Source of the DNA: Paraphysomonas bandaiensis
Taxonomy: Eukaryota; Protista; Chrysophyceae
DNA length: 64,000 bases
Direction of reading: 5' to 3'
NCBI GenBank assembly: GCA_965644295.1
Contig: CBFFRP010000291.1
Location: 124,001-188,000, forward strand
Made by a program: the position numbers and the translations under genes. Below are positions 1-7,328 of the stretch, one piece after another; position 1 is the first letter of the stretch; every line of letters begins with the position of its first letter. The notes under the pieces were generated by a model. That model worked only from the letters and a program-made list of their open reading frames with translations, was not told the DNA's origin and ran no database searches.

Positions 1-362
1 TGAACGGTATCAGAAAGTTTGATGATCTTTTCTGACAGCCGAGAATTTTCTCCGGCTGCTGCGGTAAGTTTGTCGTTTAGCGCAGCTATTGTTTTCACAG
101 CATTTGAATACTGTTCGTTTCTATCATCTAACTTCTTCGTTACCTGTTAGAGACATTACTAATATACATAAGAACCTAGTAAAGCCCTACATCTTCAAGG
201 GCACTCTCCAACTCCACTTCTAATTCTTTACTTGACTCTACATAGTCATCATACGTACGCTATATAGTAACAATAAAACACATAGATGTACATGAATACA
301 GATATATATACTTTCAGGATGTTATACTCCTCTATAGAGATCACCGCAGCGCCAGTATCCAT
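1..362 (-). CDS. NudE/NDE1-like coiled-coil protein, 5' part (runs off left edge)
   Basis: Manual splicing: exons 362-312, 259-191 and 143-<1 with GT-AG introns give MDTGAAVISIEEYNILK|RTYDDYVESSKELEVELESALED|VTKKLDDRNEQ..., matching the NudE motif (F/Y)xE(S)SxELExELExxL. Not in the ORF track. Confidence 0.7.
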
Positions 363-682: not shown

Positions 683-1114
683 GGGGTCATCCAAGATCTG
701 TATTTGGGTATTTGGTAACAAAAAATTAAATTTTTAGCATTCATTTATCAAAAAAGCGTGATTTCCTGAACACATTTTTTCAGTTTTTCTTCCCTGTTTT
801 GTATGAAATATGACTTTTTGATACTCTATAATCAATGGAATTTATAAAAATGTCAGGTTTTCTATCTCAAAAACAAGAGAAATTTCCCTTGAGTTTTAAA
901 TATGAGTGAGCAGTTGATGGCATGTTGTTTAAGGCCGAGTGTATATACAGTCTATCACTCACTCACTCCAACTCAAGATAGTATCAAGTCGTCCCATAGA
1001 AAGGGAATTTTATAGTGTGTATTGCTATCAATACAGTTCAGAGATGTGTGTTGTATGATCTGAAGGGCTTGAGAGGCTGAGATCCATATAAGTAACTAAC
1101 TAACTCCATCTCAG

Positions 1115-4100
1115 ATGACAGAAACAGAGAAGAAACTTGCAGTAGTGACTGCTGAATTAGAGACTAAACAAAAACAATTGGAAGATTTAAAGGTGAGTGT
1201 TACTGTGCGTATTATATGGATTCTAAAGTTATGGTTAGCATTCATTTGATGAGTATGTGGACTCAAGTAAAGAATTAGAGACTGAGCTAGAAGCCTCACT
1301 GGAAGATGTAGGAATGATGAATATTGATGTTGTGATGTAGGGATAACGATGAGTGTAGGTGGAGGGAAAATTGCATGAAGCAACGAAAAAGAATAAATTG
1401 TTGGAGTCAAAGCTTGCCGACCTTAATTCGCAACTCACAAATGCCACTCTCGAACAGAACCGCATGCATGATAATATGGCCAAAAGTAAGAATACCATTG
1501 AAGCTGCTAATCAAACCATCCGTAAATTGGAGCAGTCCAATGCTGAGATGGAGGACAAAATAAGAGTGCTGGAGTTCACTGAGAAGGACCTGAAGGAAAA
1601 ACTAGATGCAGCGATGGAGGCCGGCATACTCTTGCAGTGCGAGCTGGATGGTAATATAGCATCTGTAGTGTAGTTATATGATTATTTATTTGTCAGCTCA
1701 AGGATCAGACAAGGCAAGCGACGAAGTCAAAAGGATGAAATCTGAACTCACAGATCTTCAGGCTGAATTGGCACGGGTGGACGGGTGGGTAGTCGTCTTT
1801 TTTCTGTCCAAATACTTACTGTGTTAATAATAATGACGATACAGGGAGCTTAATGAATATAAAGAGCGCGAGCAGGACTTCACCGCCAAGGAGAAGGAGT
1901 GGACTCGCAAGCTTGGCAAAGCGACGTACTATGAAGAGGAGTTGTCTCGCGCAAGAAGCCAAATTGGCCTTCTGGAGGCGAGAGTACAACAGCGCACTCA
2001 GGAGAAGTCTGCTATAGAGGCAGAGTTTGCTGAATTTCGAGAAAAAGGTTCTCAAGGCACAGAGAAGACGAAAAGTGAAGTGCCTACTCGACCTACTTCC
2101 AATGGTCATGAAGCGGTGGATGGTTTTGAGACGGTAGTGGAAGACCTCTACGCGCGGTACGCTCGCTATACTGTCCACATTCTGTATTGATTCATATACT
2201 TTGTAACTTTTAATTGCGGAGCATTCCCTCTTGTTGTTTTCCTACCTGTACTTAATTGTCGTTTCCGTCAGTCTTGGAGAGGCCGAGGAAGAAAACAGGG
2301 AACTCACTGAGGCACTCGAAGAAGCACAGGAGGACCTCATGAGGAAACATCAGTACGCTTGTTCCTTGTTTTATTAAGGCTAGTAAACCGTGTTTATTAC
2401 AGATCCCACATGGAGGCCAACAAAGCAAACACTGCATTGGAAGAAAGGCTTAAAGAATCTCAAGATCATATTTACGACCTCGAGCTCCGACTAGATGACA
2501 GTAAAGCTGATCTTGCTGCTGCGAATAAATCTATCGAATTGCTAAAGAAGAAGTTGAATTCGACAGTCAACGGGACTCATTCAGGTTAGGTATATGATTG
2601 ATAGTTGACCGGCTGTAAACGGGTGGGTGTTCATCACAGAATATGACGGCCAATCGAATGAGGGCTTTGCCCTGGAGGTGGGTGCATCCCTATGTGCGTA
2701 TACATGACAGTGATTTTTACATTCTTCAGGAAGCGGAGTCAGAACATAGCAGTTCTCTGGAAGGGACATGGCTTACCGAGCGCTCGGCACTTATTAGTGA
2801 GAGAGATATGCTCCGCGCAGAGGTGGAGGAGCTGCAGCAGAGGCTCGAGCTAGGTGCCGCACCAGTGCGTCCTGTAGAGGCCCTCAACACCTCGGATATA
2901 TCGAACAGTGAGGTAGCAGGGCTCATTGATACCACTGGCAGAGCACGGTTGGCTGCAGAACAGGCAATTGAATCTGAGGATATTGACAGAATGAAGGACG
3001 AGCTTATGCATCAGCTTAGACGATATGACCATATGCGTACTAATAATGCCATGCTCCTGTACAAACTTCAGAGTGCCAAGGGAAATATACAGGTGATTTG
3101 TTTTCGTACTACATTGTTGTGGATCTAAGGTATTTGCTAGGTATGCTGTCGCACAAGGCCACCAAGCGACCAGGAACTTGGCCAGGGTGCGAAAATATGT
3201 CTCGATGTCATCGACGAGACTGAACTAGCTTGCTTTGATAGGTGTGCTCTACTTAGTTTGCTATTGTTTCGTTTAACGTGCTAATTTATCACTGCAGGCG
3301 AACCCATTCATGGAAGTCCTTTCACTTTGATAAAGTGTGGGACGAAGATGCGACACAGGTGCGGTATGTTCGATTGATTCACAGTGATGTTTACGATTCA
3401 TATAGGCCGATGTATTCTCTGACATAGAACCCCTGGCTCTATCTGTCGTGGGTGAGTGACGAGTAATCTTTGCTTAACTGTATTAATGTGATAATATAAG
3501 ATGGATTTAATTCGTGTATATTTGCCTACGGACAAACTGGAAGTGGGAAAACTTTTACAATGGTATGTTAATGGTGACAGCGATGACCGTTTTTACAGTC
3601 TGTATGAATCGATGTAGAATGGATATGGAACGGACTACGGTGTGAGCTATCGCACTTTGCATAAAATATTTGAGTTGCTAAATCTGAAAAAGAAGCAGTC
3701 AGATATAAACGCTGCTAGAACACAGGTCAGACTTTTAGGGTTACATATTGGCTAACATTGTTGACTGGTTGTATGGGACAAGCAGCGGGGTCGAAAACGC
3801 ACGAGACACGGCCGAGCCATGAGCTCCAATACCCAAGAACAGGAAAGTGGTAATATCAGTGGTCTGACCTCTGAATCGGAAGGGGATTTTACTGAAGATG
3901 AACATGTTGATTCGAACAATGAGTCGAAAGGGGGAATGAATAGGCAAAGTGAAATTAGAGGTAACACAGGTGGACTCAAGAAGCGCGAAAGCACGGATTC
4001 AATTCCGCCTTATACCCCATCAGTATCTGAAGGCGACAGTTCATTCTCATTTTCGGTGGAAGTGTCTATGCTAGAAATTTACAACGAAACGGTGAGGTTT

Positions 4101-6057
4101 TCGAACTCTTTGTATTCGTTAACATACTGGAATTAGGTTAAGGATCTTCTGGTGACTCCTGGGTCAAGCAATGGGGGGCTGGATATCCGGCATGACGCAG
4201 AGGGTAGAGTTAGTGTACCTGGCCTGACAAAAGAAGCTGTTACTTGCCTCGAGGACGTGATGGAGGTCTTTGCTCGTGGGTCTGCGAATAGGGCCACCAC
4301 CGCTACGAATCTAAACGAACACAGCTCTCGGTCCCACAGCATTCTTTGTGTGCATGTAACTACAAGCTCAAACGACGGCATGCCTATTACCGGGAAACTT
4401 TATTTGGTGGACTTGGCCGGATCGGAGCGTATGGATAAGAGTGGAGTGACTGGTCAGGCTATGAAGGAGACACAACACATCAATAAGTCGCTTTCTGCTC
4501 TTGGAGATGTAATGGAAGGCCTCGACAAAAAGTCCAAGCACGTGCCGTACAGGAATAGTAAACTCACATATCTGCTCCAGGTCTGTTTCTTCATGTGCGT
4601 TCCCCACCTTATGATATTCATTTTGTGTCTAGGATTCTTTGGGGGGAAACTCAAGAACTATGATGATTGTTACTGTATGCCCCACTGAACTGACGACGGA
4701 TGAGACAATGTTTGCCCTACAGGTGTGCCATGTATACATACTGTGCGTTGTTTTGGACTTACTTGGATTGCAGTTTGCAACTCGTGCTCGGAATATCCAG
4801 CTTGGAGCGGCTAAACGTAATGTCTCTTGGAAGGCACTGGAAGAGTCCCTCAAGAATACTCGCAAAGAACTCGCAGAGGCACGAAAACAGAAGCAGCAGG
4901 CCATGACTCTTGTGTCTGAGTTGAAAAGGGAGAGTAAGAGAACACAGGATAAGCTCTCTACGCAAATGGATACAAAGATAAGAAACATAGACGAAACCCG
5001 CAAGGGGGCGGAACTACAGATCGACGTTCTTACCAGAACGAACGCAGAGTTACTTGCAAAGTAAGAAACTTTTTACTTATTCGTATTTTCTTATACGAAA
5101 CATATATTAGGCTCCAGGAGGAGAAGGAATCACACCGGTTGGCGTCAGCTGAAGTTGACAACATGCAGAAAACGCTGAAGAAGACGCAGGAGCAAATGAA
5201 AGCAGTATGTTATTTTTTTGTATTTGTGATCTTCGTAATATGTCGATGATATTTTAGCTCACTCGGGAGAAAGAACGAGCGTTCGGAACACTGCAAGCTA
5301 GGGATAAAGAGAATGAGAATCTCAGACAGCTACTTCGATCCGTGAAAGATTCTGCTGCTTCCAATTTCTCAATGGGAAATGCCATTAAGGCTGCAACAGC
5401 GCGGATTCCCAAATCACCCCCGAGCCATTTGACTAACCGACCTCCGTTCGGCGGATCCGGGGCGAATAAAGCGAGTAAATACCTTGCAAGCAGTTCGAAA
5501 CCCCATGTAACACCGCAGTACGTATATATACTTACTTACAGTGTTTTGTTTTGATAATATATTCCGTATACAGGACACGTAGCTCATTACGTACTGGAAC
5601 TGGGCACTCTCCTCGAGCCTCCAATGGAGTGGCGCGTTCCGGTAGTCCTGCTTTGTCAGAAGACGATCCTGAAACAAGAGAATTATTTGGCAACCGTGCG
5701 TCAGATGTTACTGATGATAGCAGCAACAGGAAATCCCAATCGGGAAGGCTGCAGTCATACATGAAGCCCACCATCAGCAATAAATTGCACCATCAGTCAC
5801 CTAGACAGAGCGAGGAGACTGAGGAAGATAACGATGCCCCGCAGACTAATACCGCCCCTGTTGTTGGTGGAGGGTATCGAAAAGGCACTGTCAATGCGAT
5901 GGCATCATCCAGGGCTCAGGAAGCCATGCTTAGACACCAGGTACCGATATGTTATTGTCGTTTAGTACTCCGATGATACATATTATAGGAGAGAATGAAG
6001 AAGAAACGAGAACTTGCAGCGAAAAAGGCGAATACTGAACCTGGCTTTAGTTTCTAA
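1115..6057 (+). CDS. Kinesin-14 family motor with N-terminal NudE-like coiled coil (multi-exon)
   Basis: Kinesin-14 neck KGNIQVCCRTRP, P-loop AYGQTGSGKTFTM (~3525-3562), switch I NEHSSRSH, switch II LVDLAGSER, HVPYRNSKLTYLLQDSLGG. The N-terminus FDEYVDSSKELETELEASL...IRKLEQSNAEMEDKIR...LKEKLDAAMEAGILLQCELD resembles the NDE1 coiled coil. Many short GT-AG introns; stop TAA at 6055-6057. Confidence 0.88.
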
Positions 6058-7328
6058 TATAGGCCAGCAGGAAACGAATAGTTTAGTCGTTCATGGTATG
6101 TAATACTGCTTCAGTGGTACAATTTATGGATTTCCCCATTTTGTGACGTTTTTTGGAAATCTTTGGCTCTTATAGCCATTTTCTAGTACCGGGCAGGCTT
6201 TAGCTAGACCTGCACTTTTTAAGGTATTAAGTTACGTCGTATTTGATATTATTGCGTGAAATGAGTTGAAGCCTCATGCGACTACAACGTTTTACATTCA
6301 TCATCCCATCTATGTGCGAATTTCAATACCTCGTGCTACCTCAGCATCCATATGTGGTAGGGGTACATCGTTTGTAGCTATTATAGAAAATTGGAAAATA
6401 TATTGATTAGAGCTAATTTAGTACAATCGCCATTTCCATATATAGGTAATAGGTACCATTGCTTTTATCCAGCCAAGGAACACCTACAAATAGTGTAACA
6501 CCCTCCTATTGGTGTCAACATCATCTAATACAATAACGAGTCCAATATCTCTGACGCGCTGCTCATCAGCACTCTATATCGACTGTTGATCTTCAATAAT
6601 CATTGCTCTGATCCTTCTCAATAATCAATGAAACTAACTAGATTCATGCACCTCCACTTTAGGTTCTCCCTCCATAGTAATAATAGATAAATAACAATGA
6701 ATATGTCTACAACTACAATACTATCTACAAGCAACTTCCATAACCAGATAGCTGATTATTACAATAGCTATACATCATGAACCGCTTCCGTTTCAAAATT
6801 TTGAGCGCGGGACAAAACTAAAATTAAACCACGATTCATTACATATGTCCGTATTCATGCATCTGTTATGGGTGGAAGGTCTGCAAGACGAAGATACACG
6901 TGACTGTGCGTATACGAGGGCTTCTTCTAAATACATCAACTTAATAATGCAATAGTGTGAACTGTCTGTTTGATTGGTTTAAAATCATCAGTTACATCGC
7001 AAGTATAAGGCTGGTATCATCAATACGCACTGAGATATACACACATATCTCAGACACACCGCATGACACATCCACCCCTTCTCGTCAATGACAGAGCTCA
7101 GAGTAGATAACATATGCATCTGTGTGCATCCATACAGTGATGTGTAGTCTTTCTGTGTGGTCTCTCTTGAGGTGTAGTGTTACTTCTAAGAGGGCGATAG
7201 AGCATGCATAGAAGATATTAGGACTTTTAGGGCTGGATACACGGACAAGTAGAGAGATTGCTGTGTGAATGTGTATATATGATGCGTATGTATGTACAGT
7301 ACGTGGACAAGTGTATGTATGTGTGTGA

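Follow-up and report, generated by a model that had tools for sequence, protein, structure and literature searches.

A predicted NudE-kinesin-14 fusion protein in Paraphysomonas bandaiensis and other stramenopiles

Introduction

Few modules of motor regulation have been studied as much as that of NudE, LIS1 and dynein, and the remaining minus-end motors of eukaryotes are the kinesin-14s. Whether the two can meet in a single polypeptide, and to what end, is the question raised by a stretch of 64,000 nucleotides from the chrysophyte Paraphysomonas bandaiensis (assembly GCA_965644295.1, contig CBFFRP010000291.1, positions 124,001 to 188,000 of the forward strand; hereafter the window), in which an earlier note, made from the letters themselves, had seen a coiled coil resembling that of NudE followed by a kinesin-14 motor. 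The region concerned is one gene, transcribed and spliced to one mRNA for a protein of 1,266 amino acids (aa). Its N-terminal part is homologous to the coiled coil of the NudE proteins NDE1 and NDEL1, and its layout marks a conserved stramenopile family that is apparently undescribed. A likely function can be approached through the contact residues that the protein has kept and through the related genes and candidate partners encoded in the same genome.

A single gene with one spliced transcript

In a three-frame reading of 1100-6100 the open reading frame (ORF) pieces join via GT..AG introns with correct phases into a single forward-strand gene at window 1115-6057, comprising 22 exons and a 3,801-nt ORF of 1,266 codons with a stop at 6055-6057. 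All 21 introns are GT-AG, and 20 of them measure 45-60 nt, the exception being the 115-nt intron 5. The elements of the transcript are the following.

933..1114, forward strand: 5' untranslated region (UTR) with approximate transcript start, from the X2 RNA contig; depth begins in bin 887-1073
1115-1192, 1239-1307, 1359-1650, 1697-1784, 1845-2156, 2272-2352, forward strand: coding exons 1-6, coordinate-built model
2403-2584, 2640-2677, 2730-3092, 3141-3241, 3298-3358, 3406-3451, forward strand: coding exons 7-12, coordinate-built model
3501-3562, 3618-3725, 3783-4091, 4137-4580, 4633-4722, 4774-5060, forward strand: coding exons 13-18, coordinate-built model
5111-5204, 5258-5517, 5574-5940, 5989-6057, forward strand: coding exons 19-22, coordinate-built model
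2157..2271, forward strand: intron 5, 115 nt, joining the NudE-like part to the rest; spliced out in RNA contigs X1 and X2
6058..6246, forward strand: 3' UTR, minimum extent, from the X2 contig (to 6246) and the X5 contig (to 6191)

With intron 5 retained, the frame would stop at 2188 and the product, at about 290 aa, would be as large as a free NudE-like protein, so that a reading as two genes was initially a real rival. The transcript data bear directly on this point. The stretch is contained in 18 sequencing runs. About 0.62 of its words occur in those of RNA type, as exons alone would give, and 0.95 in DNA runs. Four runs were aligned over window 700-6300. RNA contig X1-1 (3,821 nt) is colinear with exons 2-22 and RNA contig X2-3 (3,516 nt) runs from the 5' UTR to exon 18, both with all introns removed, and the two come from separate studies under separate organism labels. 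At its upstream end the X2 contig reaches 329 nt beyond 1359, corresponding to exon 2, exon 1 and about 182 nt of 5' UTR; two tiny upstream ORFs lie within this UTR near 1045-1065. Fifteen junctions are explicit in the RNA contigs and fall exactly at the predicted GT..AG sites, the others following from the record arithmetic of X1 and X2. Between 2155 and 2728 the X1 and X2 contigs hold 300 letters, equal to exons 6, 7 and 8 together, so that the 115-nt intron 5 cannot fit. A poly(A) metatranscriptome (X5) shows identical junctions downstream, and the DNA run X16 retains every intron. Separate NudE-like and kinesin genes are thus very unlikely, because exons 5 and 6 are spliced in frame and the fusion is conserved elsewhere. 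The observation in the earlier note that the exons chain through coiled coil to a kinesin-14-type neck and motor is confirmed, since they form one ORF and stand on spliced RNA contigs, with the NudE-like part and the motor on one continuous transcript and not on separate ones.

The NudE-type coiled coil

The N-terminal part of the protein and its two most informative exons are located as follows.

1115..1784, forward strand: NudE-type N-terminal coiled coil, exons 1-4, aa 1-175, from family profile against PDB and hhalign
1239..1307, forward strand: exon 2, 69 nt, with the motif SSKELETELE; E40/E44 correspond to NDEL1 E48/E52
1359..1650, forward strand: exon 3, 292 nt, predicted equivalent of the LIS1-binding segment; E107/R118 correspond to NDEL1 E119/R130

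Searches of Pfam and PDB used single exons, the joined 1,266-aa model being compared only locally with retrieved proteins. Pfam holds no model for the NudE N-domain, and the N-terminal exons taken singly matched nothing there beyond generic coiled-coil families below threshold. Exon 3 alone, searched with phmmer against 177,635 PDB sequences, has NDE1 (7E1T) and NDEL1 (2V66, 2V71) as its top three matches, in an ungapped alignment that stops exactly at the exon end, at marginal E-values of 0.007-0.1; in view of these values the match was not accepted as proof of homology. Nor was a two-sequence profile, in which synthetic coiled coils rose as much as NudE. When the exon-3 peptides of the fused gene and of the short paralogue next to it were combined in a profile and compared with 1.84 billion representative proteins, 84 matches at E <= 0.001 resulted, most of them at residues ~40-140 of the matched protein, the same place as in the window gene. 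In one of these (P0026, 340 aa) Pfam NUDE_C is recognised at 45 bits, which exceeds the cut-off, and another (P0035) bears the name nudE-like protein 1, from Phytophthora ramorum.

A family profile (A2) was built from 32 aligned N-domains, with P0026 excluded. Against PDB it finds NDEL1 (2V71) at E 8.6e-17 and 64.5 bits over NDEL1 residues 22-185, and the best unrelated coiled coil lies 37 bits lower, at 27.6 bits. By hhalign the same profile matches window exon 3 with a probability of 98.5 and E 3.7e-15. Since these scores stand far above the coiled-coil background, the homology to NudE is real and spans the whole NudE coiled coil. The likeness of the first ~170 aa to NDE1/NDEL1 that the earlier note had drawn by eye is supported in this way over some 175 aa, with a NudE match well clear of generic coiled coils, and the three motif matches that it quoted are present in exons 2 and 3.

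The functional content of this region can be gauged from mutagenesis of NDEL1, in which E48A/E52A lowers dynein pull-down below detection and E119A/R130A abolishes LIS1 pull-down (Zylkiewicz et al. 2011, PMC3101096). Equivalent residues were read from the register of the A2-NDEL1 alignment, which is ungapped across exon 3, and their census covered 116 complete N-domains, including 74 that are joined to a kinesin motor. Among these 74 fused relatives the position of NDEL1 E48 is always E (74/74), that of E52 always D or E (74/74), that of E119 always E (74/74), and that of R130 is R in 70/74; the N-domains overall are only ~30% identical. Conservation of these contact residues is the main argument that the module may still work as a NudE coiled coil.

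From stalk to motor and tail

Downstream of the NudE-type module the protein continues through four further segments and one insertion.

1845..3092, forward strand: stalk, exons 5-9, aa 176-501; generic coiled-coil Pfam noise only, colinear with P0017 and P0086
3141..4807, forward strand: kinesin motor, exons 10 to the start of 18, aa 502-~920, Pfam PF00225
3702..4043, forward strand: motor insert of ~95 aa between helix alpha-2 and strand beta-4, spanning intron 14, with no Pfam match
4822..5377, forward strand: post-motor coiled coil, aa ~925-1075; generic coiled-coil matches, kept in P0017 to model residue 1122
5378..6054, forward strand: Ser/Pro/Arg-rich tail with basic C-terminal end, aa ~1076-1266, with no Pfam family

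The stalk ends at exon 9 in KGNIQ, a kinesin-14-type neck that presumably matches the GN junction consensus of Ncd and Kar3, and exon 10 begins with VCCRTRPP, the two being joined in RNA. PF00225 (Kinesin) is found on exon 16 at E 2.8e-49, with further matches on exons 13 and 17, and PF16796 is found on exon 13 and in orthologues. The nucleotide motifs are all intact (P-loop GQTGSGKT, switch I SSRSH, switch II DLAGSE), and judged by these motifs the motor should be catalytically intact; the tail is predicted to be basic and disordered. Among PDB entries exon 16 is nearest to KIFC3 (140.5 bits), followed by KCBP (118.3) and kinesin-1 (<= 116.7), and the motor appears closest to kinesin-14 by these nearest matches. 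The insert opens with a basic stretch (RGRKRTRHGR) and turns acidic and Ser/Glu-rich. It is missing in the Chrysoparadoxa orthologue, where the gap corresponds to model residues 620-710, and present in the RNA contigs and in a second fused copy of the gene on contig C373; as a loop it could serve regulation or localisation. Between the window gene and that second copy the last exon shows 82% identity.

A family across stramenopiles

Local comparison and Pfam place an N-domain together with a kinesin in Chrysoparadoxa australica (P0017, 1,165 aa, colinear with the window model over its full length), in Tribonema minus and in the ciliate Blepharisma stoltei (P0045, a shortened form whose N-domain nearly abuts the motor). 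Achlya and two Saprolegnia species (~1,155 aa) are added when the N-domain of P0017 is used in a word search. With the motor of P0017 as query 120 nearest motors were listed, 117 of them new; among these 117, 65 carry a full N-terminal NudE-like domain and ~25 more an N-terminally truncated one, and named sources among those listed include Ectocarpus, Triparma, Fragilaria, Cyclotella, Stephanodiscus, Leptocylindrus and Epithemia. In total the layout of N-domain and motor occurs in at least 74 protein clusters, drawn from both genomes and transcriptomes. P0095 is 74% identical to the window model over residues 5-1036. The survey of stramenopiles proposed at the outset thus uncovers a large conserved family, with members in diatoms, brown algae, oomycetes and others, and not a one-off.

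Public records name these proteins only as "kinesin motor domain-containing" or "KIFC2/C3", so that the NudE module is apparently unannotated. Searches of full-text literature brought up no account of a fusion between NudE and a kinesin, where absence is no proof that none exists, nor was there one in a 2022 review of Nde1/Ndel1 or a 2006 kinesin survey that includes a diatom and Phytophthora. On sequence grounds the NudE-N::kinesin-14 proteins form a conserved stramenopile family, apparently undescribed.

Two records stand at the margin of this family. P0035 (Phytophthora ramorum, 851 aa) combines an N-domain with a weak match to the window neck region and no Pfam kinesin domain, and may have arisen by loss of the motor from a fused gene, or else be a free NudE of unusual length. 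P0049 (NCBI RYH27817.1), a NudE-like N-domain followed by the start of a motor, is filed under an 'archaeon' metagenome-assembled genome; its contig is evidently eukaryotic and mis-binned.

Related genes and candidate partners in the genome

A profile search of the genome identifies three N-domain genes, two on contig C291 and the complete fused gene on contig C373.

Contig C373, ~199.7-204.9 kb, reverse strand: second fused paralogue, exon layout the same as in the window gene
1..361, reverse strand: short free NudE-like gene, head-to-head with the fused gene; exon 1 361-311, exon 2 259-191 (69 nt)
143 to beyond the window start, reverse strand: exon 3 of the short NudE-like gene, whose ATG is at 361

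The two fused copies are saturated at synonymous sites (pS ~0.8), whereas pN is ~0.13 for the NudE part and 0-0.08 for the exons of the motor, and this pairing of saturated pS with low pN points to long-standing purifying selection on the whole architecture. The short gene encodes 260 aa when whole (P0085) and has its own transcripts of ~930 nt. For exons 2 to 4 the phases are the same as in the fused gene. Exon 2 (69 nt) and exon 3 (292 nt) are also equal in length, and exon 4 has 91 nt in the short gene and 88 nt in the fused one. Aligned without gaps, the two genes are 65% identical in exon 2 and 30% in exon 3. The short gene (ATG at 361) and the fused gene (start ~933) diverge from a common region of ~570 bp, which is probably a bidirectional promoter. 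In an N-domain tree of 49 rows, itself unresolved, the window's fused N-domain falls together with that of the short gene beside it, at an SH-aLRT of only 89 (38% identity), as could result from local duplication of the 5' exons or from gene conversion. No free NudE adjoins the fused gene at the Saprolegnia locus.

As to the proposed partners, about ten dynein heavy-chain loci with DHC_N1 were found. One of these, on C413, has cytoplasmic dynein-1 heavy chain DYNC1H1 as its only PDB matches (E ~1e-70), and the genome also encodes many axonemal dyneins; the heavy chain on C373 was rejected as a dynein-1, being of inner-arm, DNAH10-like type. Candidates for LIS1 taken from LisH matches were likewise rejected, since they comprise two RRM proteins, a CTLH protein, a TBL1-like and an SMU1-like protein, with the sixth being noise. 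The TBL1-like gene lies on C30 (LisH, F-box-like, WD40) and the SMU1-like gene on C463 (LisH, CTLH, WD40).

The dynein heavy-chain genes (C46, C234, C442, C141, C367, C373, C413) show stop-free frames of 3,000-4,600 codons and are essentially intron-free, compared with 21 introns in the 5-kb kinesin gene. Some of these loci are paired with near-equal scores (C141/C367, C234/C442), which together with the saturated fused paralogue may reflect a whole-genome duplication of old date or a hybrid origin, and not haplotigs.

Function and alternatives

Read from N- to C-terminus, the protein consists of a NudE/NDEL1 coiled coil of ~175 aa, a stalk of ~325 aa, a neck and motor of kinesin-14 type with a lineage-specific loop insert, a second coiled coil and a basic tail. 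It would dimerise through its coiled coils, as other kinesin-14s do, which would put the NudE module at the far end of the stalk, a position that in other kinesin-14s is occupied by cargo or a second microtubule site. Because the NDEL1 contact residues are kept, we infer that LIS1 and/or cytoplasmic dynein-1 are the most likely binding partners of the module. The protein could then be described as a NudE with a motor of its own, holding or carrying LIS1/dynein on microtubules towards their minus ends; its sites of action may include the spindle poles, the microtubule-organising centre (MTOC) and nuclear positioning, and the cell's two minus-end motor systems would be coupled by it. That a NudE-kinesin-14 tethers or carries LIS1/dynein towards minus ends is regarded as probable. 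The bolder proposal, that a conserved kinesin-14 of stramenopiles is itself a NudE, attaches by its tail to LIS1 and the dynein intermediate chain, and takes part in a hybrid kinesin-14/dynein-1 minus-end machine at the spindle poles or MTOC, is a plausible but tentative one.

Several observations weigh against a role in tethering or carrying LIS1/dynein or against the gene model beneath it. Pfam NUDE_C (PF04880) is absent from the gene's exon matches and has no match in a six-frame search of the whole genome, so that the window protein is a NudE-N-domain protein and not a canonical NudE. LIS1 was not located in the genome via LisH matches, and neither the dynein intermediate-chain N-terminal motif (Dynein_IC2) nor dynactin p150 gave a usable match in a six-frame search. 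The position of NDEL1 N122 is mostly Q, not N, in the 74 fused relatives, pointing to possible drift at the LIS1 face. Finally, RNA support consists of assembled contigs and not of single long reads. The negatives for NUDE_C, Dynein_IC2, dynactin and LIS1 say little, because the exons are tiny (50-100 aa).

All but the last of these points, and the presence of a free NudE-like paralogue that could perform the canonical job, can also be read in favour of an alternative in which the NudE coiled coil has been kept only for dimerisation, as part of the stalk, or for another partner, and makes no contact with LIS1 or dynein. Yet a mere stalk has no need of surface glutamates and an arginine, and positions E48, E119 and an E148-like one are E in all 74 fused relatives, with R130 nearly as constant, despite the low overall identity. 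The residues so conserved are those whose mutation abolishes binding of dynein or LIS1 (PMC3101096). This alternative is held to be unlikely, although it retains an appreciable share of the probability.

A more radical alternative is that the protein replaces cytoplasmic dynein, as a kinesin-14 that performs dynein's tasks with LIS1 as its own regulator. Land plants, which have no dynein and in which kinesin-14s expanded and took over minus-end transport, offer a precedent, and the missing dynactin and intermediate-chain matches would fit. However, the dynein-1 heavy chain on C413 and the many axonemal dyneins speak against replacement, as does the target of LIS1 on dynein, the AAA ring, for which kinesin has no counterpart. 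Replacement is accordingly judged quite improbable. The suggestion in the earlier note that the motor could recruit, or substitute for, the LIS1/dynein machinery is therefore divided: recruitment gains from the conserved contact residues and substitution is disfavoured by the dynein-1 heavy chain, which makes recruiting the better fit, although it too is put forward as conjecture. An artefact, whether two adjacent genes merged by modelling or assembly or a generic coiled coil mistaken for NudE, is exceedingly improbable, for although the read-through of exon 5 would give a product near the 260 aa of the free paralogue, the single-exon NDE1 matches are marginal and contigs cannot prove a single molecule, intron 5 is removed in frame in contigs of two studies, the layout recurs across the protein clusters and in a paralogue with saturated dS, and the family profile sets NDEL1 far apart from other PDB coiled coils.

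Relation to known motor systems

Measured against NudE/NDE1/NDEL1 (2V71, 2V66, 7E1T), the window protein shares a coiled coil that is homologous over NDEL1 residues ~22-185 and keeps the ELExELE dynein intermediate-chain motif as well as the E119/R130 LIS1 contacts. It differs in bearing a stalk and a motor where NudE has its regulatory, phosphorylated C-terminus with NUDE_C. Measured against the kinesin-14s (KIFC3, KCBP, Ncd, Kar3), its motor core is nearest to KIFC3 and KCBP and it shows the same passage of the stalk into the GN neck and strand beta-1, but its tail is a NudE module where the others carry a basic microtubule-binding, CH or MyTH4-FERM tail, and its motor is central, with ~350 aa behind it and a loop insert of ~95 aa between alpha-2 and beta-4.

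In neurons and fungi kinesin-1 transports the LIS1-NDEL1-dynein complex, a non-covalent link that provides plus-end-directed delivery of dynein. The resemblance lies in a kinesin tied to NudE, LIS1 and dynein; the difference is that the tie here is a gene fusion, and to a presumed minus-end motor. [quoted passage not shown] By analogy only, as far as that part of the account goes, it likewise unites in one polypeptide a portion engaging dynein/LIS1 and a microtubule-binding portion of its own. Within the same limits, NuMA shows no sequence relationship to the window protein, is not a motor, and is an activating adaptor of dynein-dynactin that does not act via the intermediate chain.

Concluding remarks

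A conserved fusion is evidence of the Rosetta-stone type for a functional link, here between NudE/LIS1/dynein and kinesin-14, and it offers a case in which the coupling of dynein regulation to a kinesin can be tested directly. The prediction can be taken to the bench, since diatoms and oomycetes, which have the fusion, are transformable. If it is true, part of the stramenopile NudE-LIS1 pathway would run through a kinesin, a coupling of motor superfamilies that has no known parallel.

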